A DNA stretch of 64,000 nt from assembly GCA_020536535.1 (NCBI GenBank), contig JAHLWZ010000053.1, positions 34,842 through 98,841 of the forward strand, given 5' to 3'. Below the pieces are notes generated by a model. It made no database searches and had not been told where the DNA came from. It saw only the letters and a list, made by a program, of their open reading frames with translations. Position numbers and translations under genes: made by a program. Positions 56,914-64,000 of the stretch are shown here, in pieces; within the stretch, counting starts at the first letter, position 1; each line of letters opens with the position of its first letter. The stretch comes from Pelomyxa schiedti (taxonomy: Eukaryota > Protista > Evosea).

Positions 56914-58117
56914 CTACACTGAGAAATGTCCTCGGGAGGAGAAATCTATTATCTCCTCTTTGCTGATATAAAGTCCGGCATGGGTGAGGATTCCTGTTGA
57001 GCCATAATGAGAAGCAGTACCGGGAACAAACTACTTCATACCAATGGATGAGAAAATGAGAATCCAGAATATTGTTTTGCCAATAGCATACCACACCAAC
57101 AGAAATGTTCCTGCGAAAGAAAGATTGGTGTTTCATATGTTTCGATAGTTGAAGAGAAAAGTACCGAGAAGAAGAGAAGCAACAACTGCTTTTGGGGGAA
57201 CTGTTTTCCCAGCAATAACCACAGGAGAATTACGCCACCAGAAAAAGTAGACCCAGATGCCAGCACACAGGGAACAAATCAACAGGAAAAGGAAGTTTGT
57301 TAACCTGTAATTGAAACTCAGTACGAAGCCGTACAGAAGTGGGCACTAACGCGAAGAATAGCATGAGAATCCCGACTACAATGATGTAGTTCATATAAAA
57401 GCTGCTTATGTTTGACTTGATTCGTGGAGATAGCTCAGAAACTGAAGGAAGTCCATACCTAGGATGAAACAAAGCATAGGGTTTTAGACACCCAGGTAAT
57501 ACTATATTAAAAAAAAAAGTAATTTAAAATGCCATTTTACCCTCCATTTCACCCACCACCCCTAAAACAAACAAAAGCACTCATCACAGTGTATGCACAC
57601 ACGCACACGCGCACACACACATACTTGGATTTGTCCCCGATAAAGTCCTTCCACGAAACCAGAGCTCTCGCCTTGAGCCCGTCCTTCGCCGCCCCAGCCA
57701 TCGACGACGCGGCCGCCGCAGTCAGCGACGCGATGCTAGGGAAGGCAGGGATCGGCAACGGCGCATTGGGCTGATTCTGAGCAGAGGAGCTGCTGCTGCT
57801 GTTACTGCTGTCTCCGCTGTTGTTTGCATCGGGCTGAGGCTGGCCCTGCTGCTGCATTTTGAGCATGGCGCCGGGCAGCTGTTGCACGAGGGTGGCGGCC
57901 GCGGCAGCAAGGGGGCTGATTATGGGAGGGGGCACTGGGGTGGTGTTGGCACTGGTGCTCGGGGGCACTGACGGGGGGATGCCTGAGGCCTCTGCATTTC
58001 ATAAACCACACGAGAGGAAGGAACAGTTAGTTGGTAACTAATACATTTAGGTTAACTTCATATCCCACGGGCACGGGGTGCGTCACCTTCCGGCAACTTC
58101 TGAAACTCATCAGCCAT
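56914..58117 (-). CDS. PRA1 family (prenylated Rab acceptor) protein
   Basis: Spliced MADEFQKLPE|EASG...ALVSWKDFIG..|YGLPS...PRIKSNISSFYMNYIIV, hydrophobic hairpins, C-terminal ILTHAGL. Confidence 0.8.
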
Positions 58118-58494: not shown

Positions 58495-59300
58495 TTGAAG
58501 TGGGCAGTGTCTGTCTTTAATATAGAGCTGAATCTAGGGTCGTTCTGGTTTTGGCCACATCAACTTCGTGAGCTCTTCTTGTGGCAAACACCAGGGCAGA
58601 GTGGGACGCGTTCCCGAGCTACGCACGGCAGGTGGATGCTGCCCCTCGGCGCTGATGACAGGTCCGTGATGATGGCCGGTGACCTGGAGGCACCCGATCC
58701 CAGCGCGACGGCTACGAGGGTGAAACTGCCCTGGGCCGTGGAGACCATCGAGGTGTCAAAGTGCTTCCCGAATGAAGCACTATTCATTGCGGGTGGGCCT
58801 GATGCCTCGGTGGTCATTGTCGCACTGATGGACGTTGAGAGGACAGTGGCGTCCAAGACCCTCGCTGTTGTGAGCGAGATCAGGGTTCCACGGGAAGATA
58901 CAAATGTTGAAGAGGGTCTTGTTATGTTCGAGGGGCTGACATTTCCTCCACTGGCACTTCATTTGAGGAAGAAGAAGAGCTACAATTACACTTGTGTGTG
59001 GGAGTGGTGGTGATGATGACGTGGCGGTCGTCTTGCTGCGGGTTCATGTTCATCACATCAGGGAACACACTCCAGTTGCTGCTTCTGGCTTCGTTGTTGT
59101 CTCTGTATTTCAGTGTTCCTGTGTTTGCTCTTTGTTCTGATAAAAAAAAAAACATATTTCTATTCCTCACCACAGCAACAACCTCATTCACTGCCGACTT
59201 ACGAAGTGGATGGGCTTTATTCGACGAGTGACAGCAGGGTAACTAAGCTTGACAACAACAGACGTGGCACCAGAATCCCTGTCGGCAGTCTCCATAAATC
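58495..59300 (+). pseudogene. Truncated/disrupted paralog of the 31717-33078 family
   Basis: No ATG at the ORF start and frames are broken. VALMDVERTVASKTLAVVSE and RVTKLDNN parallel LCVVDLPRSCTGNSLVTASST and KISQLNGS in the 453-aa ORF. Confidence 0.45.
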
Positions 59301-59618
59301 GCTCTCGAATCCGCATCAGATGATACAACGGATCACCAATGAGTGTCCGTGTCCAACCTAGACACAAAGCAGTGAAACAAATTGGTGCAGGGCTCGGAGG
59401 GAAGAAAATATCAAAATTTTTGCAACTAGAGCACCAAAACATAACACAGTACAAGCATGTACACTCAAGTGCTTGCGTGCATGCTTGTTTGAGGCTTGCT
59501 TTTGTGGGCAAAATCACACTGACGGGTATCATCACTCCGTGCTTCTGTTGTCTACCCAGATTTACCGCAATTGAATCCTTGAATGCTTTGGGCAGATAAA
59601 CAAATTTGTTACACGGTT

Positions 59619-62600
59619 TCAAGAAGATGAGGTGGTTTTTGTCACATATGAGGATTTTCTGGAGGAAAGCATGTCTTTGCGGGCATCCTCAAGCTGCTTC
59701 TCTAGCTGTAATATCTGAAAGGCAGGTCAACAGTGAAGAAGGTAAAATGGAAATGGGTTACCCTCATTTGTTGCTCCAATTCCTTCACTTTGGTGCCTGT
59801 TGTAGACCGCAACTGAGATTCCACTTCAGGGGTGTTGGTAGGTGCAGAAGGAGCTGACATAGTTGACTTGACATGTGTAACCAACTGTGCTGTGGCCTTC
59901 GCCACGCCTCCAGCAGCCTGCACAACAGCAACCTGGTCCTCAGAACCCGGAGCAGTTTTTACCTTGCAAGATGCTACAAGTTGAGCAGTTGTACTTGCTA
60001 TGGTTTTGCAAGTTGCCACAAGTCGCGTTTCATCCACCTACGCTGGTTAATAGAAAGAATAATAATAACAAAGATACCGATTGGTCACCGTTCACACAGG
60101 CGTTGCAGGCCGCAACTAATTCCTTTGTGCACTCAGCAACACATTTCGCGGCGGACAAGAGGCCCTCACTCCATTGATTATCTCTGTTGTAGACCTATCA
60201 CGAAATTGGAATGATACATCTCCTTGGGCAACATACAGCTCCTTTCCTCACTGTGCCAATGTTTTTTTGTGCGCGAGCAGCAGCAGTGACAATGGCGGCA
60301 CTTGCATTTGCTACCATTGCAACATAGCTTGCAAATTGCCTATGTTTGGTTAGAGTACTATTTGTGTTTCACACTTTACCCGGTTTCTTCATTCACTGCA
60401 ATTGCAGCAGCAGCAGAGGAAGAAGCTGAAGCCCTTACACCAGAAGCGGCGGGACTAGACGAAAATGCTCGGGCTAGTGCTTCCATTTCCTACAGAAGTG
60501 AATGCAATTCGATAAATATCACAGCGTTACCGCGGCCAATAGTTGCATTTCTTCTTCTGCATTTCCTGGAGTTGCAGGAGTGGCGGAAGAAGTACGGGCA
60601 GAAGTTGTTAATGAAGCCTCCCTGGGTGGGATTGGTGGTGGGGAAGACGGCGGGGGAGGCGGAGGAACAGAAGGAGGGGGAGGAGGTGCCCCACCAGAAG
60701 AACCTCTAAGTGCTGCTGTAGCTGCTTTAGCAGAACCAACTGAAGTCTCCAAAACTTGGAGACTATTTGGTTTTAGTCAAAAAGGGATGTAAAACTTGGG
60801 AGTGACCTGGACTCCAATGCTGTATTTACTTCGTTAATAAGGGATGCCTGAATGCAACCTTTTGCAAATGTATCTAGATAATTAATAAGAACAGCACGGG
60901 TGCTCTTAACGTTTTCAACAATTGGTCTCGACGTTTCCAAAGGAAGTTCTTTTCAAAAAGTTACGCAAGCCCTCAGTTATTCATTCTCTCACCCTCAATG
61001 AGATCGAACAGTAATTGCATGGCATCAATAACAGCTTTCGTACTCTGCGTAATTTGGGCTTGAGCTGCCTCTGGTTGGTCATAGGGCCTGAGATCGAATT
61101 AGGGTTTTCAGGAGACAGGTATGGAAAACCGCTCAAAAGAATTCTTTAGGTCGACTATAGCTGATTTGAGCTGGTTCAAGGCTGTTGTCACATTTATGAA
61201 GCTAAAATATAAAATATCAAACAATGCATTGGTTGAAGCAGGTGGAAATACCTGGTCTTCCCACGTACAGTGGGTGTCTTGGGTGCAATTTTTGTGAGAA
61301 TCACCTTCATGTCATCCAAAAGTTTGGCACCAACTAACCAAATGTTATTTACTTTTTCATGTTATCTTTTTACGCACTCTTATCTGTGGAGTTGGCAATA
61401 AAATTATCAATATCCCGTGCAGAACCTGTTACAGCTTGTTTGGCAAGATTGAAAGACTTGACAACAAGAGCATCTGTTGAGTATTGCTGCATATCTGAAA
61501 CTGTTATTATTATGGCATGAGGAAGACAGTACCTTTGCTTGCAAGGATGAGTTGCTGACCAGCAATAGTAAATGCCTTTATAGCAGCATACGCACCCTAC
61601 TGGGTTTTAGGAAATTTCCTAGGTTTACAATACCAGCCTGACATGACACTGTATCTCTCATAGTACTACAGCAGATGTGAAGGGAGGAGCACAGTTGCCT
61701 GAGCAAATCAGCAAGTAGCTTAGCTTTTTCTCCTAAAACAGCTTGGGCAGGTTTGGTTGCAGCTTGCTGCAGCAAAGATCAGTCGGAGTGGAAGAAGTCC
61801 CAGTTACCTCCAATTGGGCAATGATTCCACCTACATTTGCTGTGCATGCAGTAACTTCATGACTGGAAGACTCTAGTGTTGTGCTGTATTCGGGATCATT
61901 ATTTGCAAATCAAATCGGGGGGTATGTCTACTTTGGTGGTACTTCAATTTTAGTGGCCAATTGACCAGCAGCAGCGAACATGGAATAAGATTCAATCTCA
62001 CTCATCATGGAATCCATTGCAGATAGTGCATCCTTTCTTGGCTTTCAACTATTGAACAGAAAGAGTATTTTGGACCTGCATAAGTATACGCCCTGTAAGA
62101 GCATCTTCTGCCCTGGCTTTTTCTGCTGCAATTTGTGCTGGGAATTTGAATTTACTTGTTGGTGCCGAGACACTTTCACACGGGGGAAAGCTTGATAATG
62201 ATAAAGGTACATGTACCTTCAACAGTTAGATGTAATGGGAAAACTATGGAGTTACTTTGATGTTGGATCCCATGGAAACTATCGCTTTAGCAGATATGTG
62301 GTAAACACAATTTATTTGCTGTGCATTCACTACAGAAGGTTGGACATCCAAGAAAGAAGGTATGCAAAGTGGAATATGAGCGTCATATTCCTCCTTCCTG
62401 ATTGGAAACCCTTCCTTCACTGTCTGGGCAAGTAGTGTGCATTTCTCAGTCTTTGAACCGAAACGCAAAACTGGTTTTTTAAAAAAGGAAATCAACCATT
62501 AGAAACAAGATGGGTACTGCGCTCTACCTTGACGTAATTTAAGTTCTAAATACTGCACTGATTTTCGACTCACATTGTAAATGAAGATGTGGGAAGAAAC

Positions 62601-63458
62601 CTAAGAGGGGAAAAAAAAAAGGCAAACAACGTAGCTAAACTTACTGTGTCACCTGGACAGGCAGTTTTTTTGTCAAGGGCAAGATCCAACTGTAAATCAG
62701 CCTTATTGCCTTTGCCTTTAATTACAGTCTTTTTGTCTATGGGTGTGACGGGTTCCAAGAGATAGGGCCTTCCTATGAGAAGGTCACAACTAAATAAAAT
62801 GAAAATGAAAGCCCTTAGCTAACCTACACGAACTACATGCTTCAACTTATGCAACTTTACTTTGGGATGATTTGCAACAGTAAGAAATGCTGTTAACCTA
62901 TATTCAACCTTCACCTGCGCAGAATGTGGGGAATACAAATAGTTGGTTTTGAAAGACCTTGCCAGACTTGAACACACAAGAAGGTGGGCCATCAGGTGGT
63001 ACTCGGAACGAGAAAGGATAAGTGTGAGTGCCAACAGTTGGCTGCTTCTCGGGTGTGAATGTAGTCAGTACAGCTGTTTCAGCAAAATAGATACGTTTCT
63101 TCCCTTTTCCCTGTCATAACATAGGAGGAATTTCAATTCTCAAATGTCAAGTGAAATTGATTGACATACAGAAGGTACTGTCTTGGTTGAAGACATGTTC
63201 TTAGGAGGCTCTACGTCTCCGCTGAATGCAAACGTTAGATCTAACGACAAAAACAAAGAAGAGTGCAGAGAGAGAGCTGGCGTCGTACGCAGAACTAGAC
63301 GATTCGTAGGCGTCAAATACTACGACGAGCGAAGATACGGGCTTTGATTGCGATCCCAAAACGACAAAGAAATGAACATCTCCCGACAAGGTGTCGCCTG
63401 TGCGACAATAAACCTGGTTCGTCTTGATAGACAGCCCGGATCCACGACCCGACGCCAT
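59619..63458 (-). CDS. Arrestin-domain / talin-rod / I/LWEQ (THATCH) fusion protein
   Basis: N-terminal arrestin (LSIKTNQVYCRTGDTLSGDV, VKVEYRLTA, LALDKKTACPGDTV, PSVVNAQQINCVYHI). Talin-like IESYSMFAAAGQL. I/LWEQ QWSEGLLSAAK..RLVATCKTIASTTAQLVASCKVK..ELEQQM|ILQLEKQLEDARK. Confidence 0.85.
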
Positions 63459-63495
63459 TGAAAAGTTTTTTTAGAGAATGGCGAAGACACTTTCT

Positions 63496-64000
63496 TAATC
63501 GGGTTCGAACGAAAATGTGGACTTGGCCAGGGATCTGATAGATAGACAGGACGAGTTCTGGGGCAGGGTCATTTGGAGGATATCTCTGTGGGGCAAACTT
63601 GGTTGTTGAGGTGTTGGCAGATCCTAGCTAGGTTGAATATTTGTGTGACTAAATTGTTGACCATTTGACGTCGGTTTTGTTAGGAATCGAAATGGCCCTA
63701 AAACAAATGTATGTTGCATCCACAAGAACGCCTCGATGTCAAAACTGATCAAATCACTGGCCCAGTGGTGAAACGCCTAACTGCCTCCATGTACACCATA
63801 CATACAACTGCAGGCAACGCATCCCCCACCACGGAAATACTTTTTTAGGTTAATGATGGTGTCTGCGAGATAAAAGGTAAGAGACATGTTGGAATCGTAG
63901 TCCCGGAGAAGGAGGTAGCCAAAGAAAGTTTCTCTCGGGAACCTTCCATGTACTGGCAAGACAAGGTACCCACCATCTGGAAAATCAACATCTGGCGTTT
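63496..64000 (-). CDS. Hypothetical protein, 3' part (5'-partial)
   Basis: Open frame from the window edge (..PDVDFPDGGYLVLPVHGRFPRETFFG..) followed by intron-like GT-AG gaps. No domain recognised and the 3' end is uncertain. Confidence 0.35.

Follow-up and report, generated by a model that had tools for sequence, protein, structure and literature searches.

A Pelomyxa schiedti gene joining an arrestin head to a talin-like rod and THATCH tail

This study focused on a minus-strand gene at 59619-63458 of a 64,000-nucleotide stretch of DNA from the amoeba Pelomyxa schiedti (hereafter the window; assembly GCA_020536535.1, contig JAHLWZ010000053.1, positions 34,842 to 98,841, or G000:C53:34842-98841 in our numbering), the end of which coincides with the end of the contig. 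The gene is real and expressed, and its product is quite likely a single chain of 944 residues in which an arrestin head is followed by a talin-like rod, a polyproline linker and a THATCH tail; this chain would act as a linker in the manner proposed below. The combination of arrestin and THATCH domains is real, conserved and undescribed, and represents a third head type for THATCH linkers within Evosea amoebae. Full-text literature on arrestin together with talin or LWEQ, or in Amoebozoa, Dictyostelium or Protostelium, yielded no description of the architecture. An earlier, sequence-only reading of the window knew of no described protein built in this way, and for the literature this still holds, as no paper was found; the public databases, however, already contain the architecture without a name, in three relatives that have been neither named nor studied, i.e., a transcript of Protostelium nocturnum (P0010), a locus of a third organism (L007), and a paralogue on contig C939 of the same P. 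schiedti genome.

Gene structure and expression

Between 59400 and 63700, the minus strand breaks up into short open segments that shift frame, with GT..AG gaps of 40-60 nt between them; this is the pattern of an intron-rich eukaryotic gene. The largest arrestin exon (62256-62471), used as the query in a profile-free search of 1.84 billion proteins, recovered at 100% identity the public record of the gene, KAH3767423.1, a 944 aa 'hypothetical protein Pelo_738' of P. schiedti (here P0001). A 1636-aa tandem-repeat protein (P0003) from the same exon search was rejected as a chance match. The spliced codons of P0001 match the minus strand of the window exactly, giving a coding region (59619-63458) of 23 exons and 944 codons that begins with an ATG at 63458, has its last codon at 59622 and closes with a stop at 59619-59621. 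The 22 introns are 38-67 nt long, and all but one (21) are of the GT-AG type. The exception is a GC-AG intron of 41 nt at 61597-61637, the sole non-GT donor of the gene, which is backed by an RNA joint (61595|61637) that resolves to GC..AG. According to the P. schiedti genome paper, 1.59% of introns are GC-AG and there are 7.4 introns per gene, and the gene models came from Augustus, followed by PASA/EVM refinement on transcriptome data (PMC8887013).

Two of the introns lie where the arrestin and talin-like parts meet. The sequence-only reading had described a single frame running from one part into the other through two GT-AG introns of about 40 nt, and the public model has both, each in phase 0. 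Intron 7 (62217-62255, 39 nt) falls within the end of the arrestin-C domain (GSNIK|VHVPLSL), and intron 8 (62033-62075, 43 nt), which is seen in RNA, separates exon 8 from the first rod exon (GRILMQ|DALSAMDS in the protein). Exon 8 itself (62076-62216, aa 295-341) encodes the last arrestin-C strand and an SFPP motif, followed by a conserved linker helix, SKFKFPAQIAAEKAR..LTGRIL.

Expression was assessed from the Logan contigs of X1-X3, three single-cell RNA libraries made from the same sample; these contigs were compared with the window over 59000-63950 together with those of one DNA-like run (X4). The RNA contigs display 14 of the 22 introns, including 62033-62075, and every one of the thirteen listed joints, the GC-AG one among them, is an intron of the public model; the introns lacking RNA contig coverage are 61495-61532 and the seven inside or bordering the arrestin part. 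The splice between exon 8 and exon 9 was read by loose contig ends from two of the libraries: X1 record 4 (61932-62034) runs on for 15 letters into the end of exon 8, and X2 record 10 (62075-62216) for 17 letters into the start of exon 9. On the DNA side, an independent contig (X4 record 18) covers 59191-63651 without a mismatch, so that the arrestin-rod join is not an assembly artefact, and a chimeric assembly was ruled out on these grounds.

Arrestin head

The head extends over 62187-63458 (aa 1-304) and is encoded by exons 1-7 plus the ten codons with which exon 8 begins. A Pfam scan of the protein, which had been put forward as a check by the sequence-only reading, placed Arrestin_N, Arrestin_C and I_LWEQ above their cut-offs, and found no FERM family and no ANTH in P0001. 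Arrestin_N matched at 62831-63080 (aa 85-153), with 33.7 bits when all of P0001 was scanned and 37 bits for aa 1-300 alone (cut-off 24.9), and Arrestin_C at 62187-62698 (aa 181-304), crossing intron 7 into exon 8, with 47-51 bits on P0001 (cut-off 27.7) over positions 4-135 of the 137 in the profile. When the same families were sought exon by exon, only the I_LWEQ exons and a marginal match to Arrestin_N appeared, and Arrestin_C was missed because the domain is split over exons. Among the sequences of solved structures, aa 99-235 matched beta-arrestin-1 with 32 bits (phmmer, E 2.6e-7), and the match of the head to TXNIP was weaker, at 23 bits.

The label 'alpha-arrestin', which had been attached to the head from sequence, is not established, given the missing PPxY motif and a score closer to beta-arrestin-1 than to TXNIP. 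Neither PP.Y nor LP.Y, the patterns for recruitment of Nedd4/Rsp5, occurs in P0001 or P0010, and P0001 has no clathrin box (L[LIVM]x[LIVMF][DE]), DPF/DPW or FxDxF motif. In P0001, the rod stands where the C-tail of an arrestin would be. An ESM Atlas search for look-alikes gave no usable match, and a scan of metagenome contigs with aa 1-375 gave 266 pattern matches with no relative among them.

Talin-like rod and polyproline linker

The linker helix and helical rod (60705-62186, aa 305-653) comprise about nine helices, or roughly two bundles of the talin type; in an AlphaFold2 (AF2) model of aa 296-944, these helices lie over aa 320-653 with a predicted local distance difference test score (pLDDT) of 60-84. 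A rod profile that combined P0001 and P0010 with the translated exons of L007 and C939 aligned with aa 320-590 of a talin-type protein of Acytostelium, within the talin rod, with an hhalign probability of 91.5% (E 8.5e-7, 236 columns); the alignment includes ALSAMDSMMSEIESYSMFAAAGQL against ALESISRVTSDLDAASLFAAAGQV. This segment of the Acytostelium protein carries Talin_IBS2B and corresponds to R11-R12 of talin. With the middle region of a Sla2-type ANTH-I/LWEQ protein, the same profile gave an hhalign probability of 0.4%, in agreement, like the Pfam result, with the earlier reading of a protein headed by neither FERM nor ANTH. The Pfam family TLN1-like_RS reached 22.8 bits on aa 341-465 of P0001, under its cut-off of 27. 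By profile comparison, then, the rod (~350 aa) is a homologue of the final bundles in the talin rod (about R11-R12), and the C-terminal 600 residues as a whole look like the R11-R12-R13-DD end of a talin. The 'talin rod' of the sequence-only reading is accordingly talin-like by hhalign but amounts to about two bundles of the R11-R12 kind and not to a full rod.

Between rod and tail lies a proline-rich linker (60570-60704, aa 654-698), predicted to be disordered (AF2 pLDDT < 50). Its polyproline core, with PPPPP and PPPPPP runs, spans 60618-60695 (aa 657-682), close to where the sequence-only reading had seen it (60600-60690). Proline runs occur at the equivalent place in L007, and are far longer in the C939 paralogue.

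THATCH tail

The tail consists of a five-helix THATCH bundle (59849-60569, aa 699-884, with the upstream helix included) and a C-terminal dimerisation helix (59628-59824, aa 893-942), which forms a single long helix in the model. It had been called a full I/LWEQ module with a dimerisation helix, and this was upheld by a Pfam I_LWEQ match of 135.4 bits on aa 784-936 of P0001, covering positions 1-150 of the 151 in the profile, as well as by the modelled helix. An AlphaFold model, another check that the sequence-only reading had named, succeeded for this part of the protein, showing over aa 699-942 a bundle and a long terminal helix with pLDDT mostly > 90; the head fared worse, as discussed below. 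By VIA-align, the bundle model superimposes on HIP1R (1r0d) with Z 20.1 and an rmsd of 2.5 Å over 181 of 190 residues, and on talin R13 (2jsw) with Z 19.8. Similarity to Sla2 (65.5 bits) and to talin-1 R13-DD (64.8 bits) was about equal among the sequences of solved structures.

A HMMER alignment to talin-1 R13-DD (9az6_F) showed that the counterparts of Q2437, K2443, V2444 and K2445 are identical (AQLVASCKVK against AQLLVACKVK), K846-V847-K848 of P0001 (59957-59965) being aligned with K2443-V2444-K2445 on talin's actin-binding surface. In the dimerisation helix, the counterparts of talin L2515, A2518, R2519 and R2526 are likewise identical. Mutation of K2443-V2444-K2445 lowers F-actin binding by talin to 27%, and talin mutations at these surface and helix residues reduce actin binding or abolish the dimer (PMC2168396). 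A homodimer prediction for aa 699-944 scored 0.05 against a mark of 0.32, a result that counts neither way. At the level of sequence and predicted fold, the tail was shown to hold every feature known to be necessary for dimeric F-actin binding.

Related genes

Whole-protein analyses were carried out with the public P0001 sequence, and L007 and C939 were compared with it exon by exon. The Protostelium relative is P0010 (EukProt EP01117_Protostelium_nocturnum_P004541), a Trinity transcript with an open reading frame (ORF) of 1140 aa that is marked complete. Its Pfam matches are Arrestin_N (51.7 bits), Arrestin_C (80 bits) and I_LWEQ (94 bits), and it resembles P0001 both in the head (30% identity over 331 aa, E 3e-34) and in the tail (E 1e-19). 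From exon 3 onward it aligns across the exon junctions of P0001, that of intron 7 included, without a gap, which validates the splice sites of P0001 over that range. P0010 differs from P0001 in that its rod is longer, a Q/P-rich stretch follows the head, two NPF motifs are present and long proline runs are missing.

The third organism is represented by L007 (Logan ERR12015700), a colinear orthologue with 36-59% identity exon by exon, the highest value being reached against aa 294-373 of P0001, the region of exon 8 (59%). Both head-rod junctions of L007 have phase-0 GT-AG introns (NIK|THV and ILLQ|DALS), and a proline run precedes the tail. The C939 paralogue (G000:C939:27600-32100, minus strand; L008/L009) keeps the head, the linker exon (PKFKFPAQIAAEK..LTGRILIQ), the rod exons and a region rich in proline, where 14 prolines stand in a row, and its intron 7 is at the same phase-0 position as in the window gene. 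Its tail is degenerate, with an I_LWEQ score of 11.6 bits that is below Pfam detection, and still ends in a helix, ELEYQLALLDCQLEH.

The window gene, its C939 paralogue, the orthologue of the third organism and the Protostelium transcript were thus shown to form a small conserved family within Evosea, the phylum to which both Pelomyxa (Archamoebae) and Protostelium (Variosea) belong. The family was found in these three organisms only, and a word-limited database search, confined to proteins of 519-1652 aa with words in common with P0001, added no further member.

A single gene or a merged annotation

An annotation that had merged two neighbours, an arrestin-domain gene that stops just past exon 7 and a talin-tail gene that begins with exon 8, would give the same public record. 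Reading past exon 7 would yield ...SNIKVTP and reach a stop at 62244-62246. Some features of the RNA weigh against a single chain. Exons 1-7 and intron 7 of the locus are covered by no RNA contig from X1-X3, and RNA depth declines from the 3' end of the gene and ends at 62216, the start of exon 8. At that same first base of exon 8, X2 record 10 stops with extra letters, which we take to be those of the Smart-seq template-switch oligo and which could mark the 5' end of an RNA. Since RNA coverage halts there, a shorter, rod-only transcript or isoform may exist.

These signs have other explanations. A depth weighted toward the 3' end is expected for oligo-dT single-cell libraries. The Logan RNA contigs retain the oligo letters (CCCATGTAC...) at their ends at two places, 61462 and 62216, and because the letters at 61462 sit in the middle of an exon, those at 62216 mark a truncated cDNA and not a start site; a transcription start at 62216 was rejected for this reason. 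In X2 record 10, a sense base, 'A', separates the oligo from exon 8; it fits the last base of exon 7 (A, at 62256) and not the G of the unspliced genome (62217), and this is a one-base hint of splicing and nothing beyond that.

The exons themselves point to one chain. Arrestin_C ends at aa 304, inside exon 8, so that the last strand of the arrestin-C domain is encoded by an exon that is spliced to the rod in RNA. In P0010 the aligned counterpart of that strand (VHVPLSLSSFPP) is VRIPIVMGSFPP, which follows on from the remainder of arrestin-C without interruption. No in-frame Met, and hence no start codon, precedes the conserved part of exon 8, and fewer than 30 nt would separate the putative stop from exon 8. 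The Protostelium transcript holds a complete single ORF, and the in-frame junction is kept at two further genomic loci, L007 and C939. With this evidence on the other side, we consider two merged genes highly improbable.

Flanking sequence

Just 3' of the gene, a short stretch (59157-59283) is common to many unrelated contigs, with 1-5 mismatches, beyond which the sequences are unlike. The contigs sharing it belong to two RNA runs and to the DNA-like run, in which depth reaches 290, and it looks like a dispersed short repeat. Upstream of the sequence that neighbours the gene toward lower coordinates, two blocks, 57650-58100 and 58550-58850, have a G+C content of 59-66%, compared with about 42-45% around them. 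The genes beside the orthologue (L007:4778-6133 and elsewhere on L007) are an RFC-like gene, an eIF3_p135/CLU-like gene and a 451-aa ORF, none of which is present in the window; the arrestin-talin gene is the only one that the window and L007 have in common.

Proposed function and origin

The most likely origin of the family is the joining of the C-terminal part of a talin to an arrestin-domain gene. In the protein, the tail would dimerise and bind F-actin like the ABS3 site of talin, and the arrestin head would bind a membrane receptor, the tail of a transporter or the membrane itself. The rod would serve as a spacer, possibly a force-bearing one, and the proline runs could recruit profilin or actin regulators of the SH3 or EVH1 type. 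The protein as a whole would then tether membrane cargo selected by the arrestin to the actin cortex, the role that Sla2/HIP1R fills by means of an ANTH head and talin by means of a FERM head. A bolder version can be offered tentatively, with the odds somewhat against it: arrestin-THATCH proteins would form a third class of force-bearing membrane-to-actin linkers, whose head couples chosen receptors or transporters, directly and as a dimer, to actin for uptake in amoebae by endocytosis, phagocytosis or macropinocytosis, bypassing ubiquitin ligases and clathrin adaptors. On this view the class, so far unrecognised, would go back at least as far as the ancestor that Archamoebae and Variosea share.

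Several results weigh against this picture. The coupling of arrestin-bound cargo to F-actin is deduced wholly from domain homology. The AF2 model of the head is poor, being all-beta with a mean pLDDT of 53 and a predicted TM-score (pTM) of 0.42 from a thin alignment of 3 organisms. A deeper alignment was not to be had, since a head-only database search gave nothing: among proteins of 165-525 aa, aa 1-300 had no close stand-alone arrestin relative at E <= 0.001. The top 50 Foldseek matches to the head model are all arrestins or Vps26 (E 2e-8 to 1e-6), at a TM-score of only ~0.3 and an rmsd of ~16 Å with this poor query, and because of the poor model the assignment to arrestins rests on the sequence profiles. 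To judge from motifs, the usual effector links of arrestins (ubiquitin ligase, clathrin/AP2) are missing from the head, as P0001 contains no PPxY, clathrin box, DPF/DPW or FxDxF; actin would appear to replace these outputs, which is the point of interest here. As to origin, a maximum-likelihood tree of 20 I/LWEQ domains (17 ANTH-type, one talin, two arrestin-type) grouped the ANTH-type tails (support 96/95) apart from talin and the two arrestin-type tails, which is weak support for a talin affinity because the tree holds one talin sequence only and has long branches. Several short rod exons of L007, which MAFFT had put on I/LWEQ columns, were left out of the tail alignment.

The fusion could also be real and the head be something other than a selector of cargo. 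It might regulate the tail within the molecule, analogous to the talin head that masks the rod in autoinhibited talin, or be a lipid-binding or oligomerising module, with the rod, being similar to R11-R12, serving in adhesion. The R11-R12 region of talin holds integrin-binding site 2, and it is with the Talin_IBS2B-bearing part of a talin that the rod aligns; a head without PPxY and clathrin motifs would also suit such a role. Evidence of contact between head and tail is lacking, however, no integrin-type partner has been identified, and arrestin folds are best known for binding the tails of receptors and transporters. Although the present data do not separate this alternative from cargo tethering, we regard it as rather unlikely.

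If cargo tethering by an arrestin head is correct, evolution has tied membrane proteins to actin a third time, and with a head that is specific for cargo. The family would provide a simple test case for the transmission of force by an arrestin fold. It would also show the talin tail (R11-R13) moving between genes as a unit, which is relevant to the pre-animal assembly of the adhesion toolkit. The organisms that carry arrestin-THATCH proteins are not genetic models, which limits their use.

Comparison with known systems

THATCH tails have been described with two types of head, FERM in talin, for adhesion, and ANTH in Sla2/HIP1R, for clathrin-mediated endocytosis. P0001 is like talin (talin-1 and the TalA/TalB type of Dictyostelium) in its C-terminal THATCH bundle and dimerisation helix (phmmer 65-69 bits, and a Z of 19.8 to R13 for the model), in the conserved KVK, Q and L/A/R/R residues, and in a rod akin to R11-R12. 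It is unlike talin in having an arrestin N+C head in place of FERM (F0-F3), about two rod bundles before R13 where talin has twelve, and a polyproline linker between rod and THATCH.

Canonical talins are also present in P. schiedti. On two contigs (G000:C827:5223-13888 and G000:C850:30814-39330, minus strand), FERM_M and I_LWEQ matches share a strand at a distance of about 8 kb, with talin-rod matches between them, and from this talin order it follows that the genome has at least two canonical talin-like genes; the arrestin-headed gene is therefore an addition and not a replacement. Contigs C809 and C791 have further FERM and talin-rod matches. Talin_middle (PF09141) had no match in the genome, and the search was uninformative because the controls gave none either. 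ANTH gave a single match in the genome, on contig C896, which adjoins no I/LWEQ match; that ANTH gene may have its end on C1323, a short contig with I/LWEQ.

With Sla2, HIP1 and HIP1R (End4), the analogy would be one of layout, a head that binds membrane or cargo, a spacer, and a dimeric THATCH tail, and the likeness of the tail is equal to that seen with talin (65-69 bits for Sla2, and a Z of 20.1 to HIP1R 1r0d). P0001 departs from these proteins in that it has no ANTH, in its dissimilar middle region (0.4% by hhalign), and in lying outside the ANTH-type group in the tail tree.

To our knowledge, arrestins are adaptors that reach their effectors via short motifs, and none has an actin-binding module of its own. 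P0001 shares an arrestin N+C core with extra domains with the arrestin-domain proteins of Amoebozoa (AdcA-F of Dictyostelium) and with alpha-arrestins (ARRDC, TXNIP and the yeast ARTs), and differs from alpha-arrestins in having no PPxY motifs for ligases of the Nedd4 type. A 2009 review described arrestin cores with added domains as typical of Amoebozoa, giving SAM, MIT, LIM, FYVE and C2 as partners and naming neither talin nor actin among them (PMC2699828). In the family described here, unlike in AdcA-F and the alpha-arrestins, the partner of the arrestin core is a talin rod with a THATCH tail.

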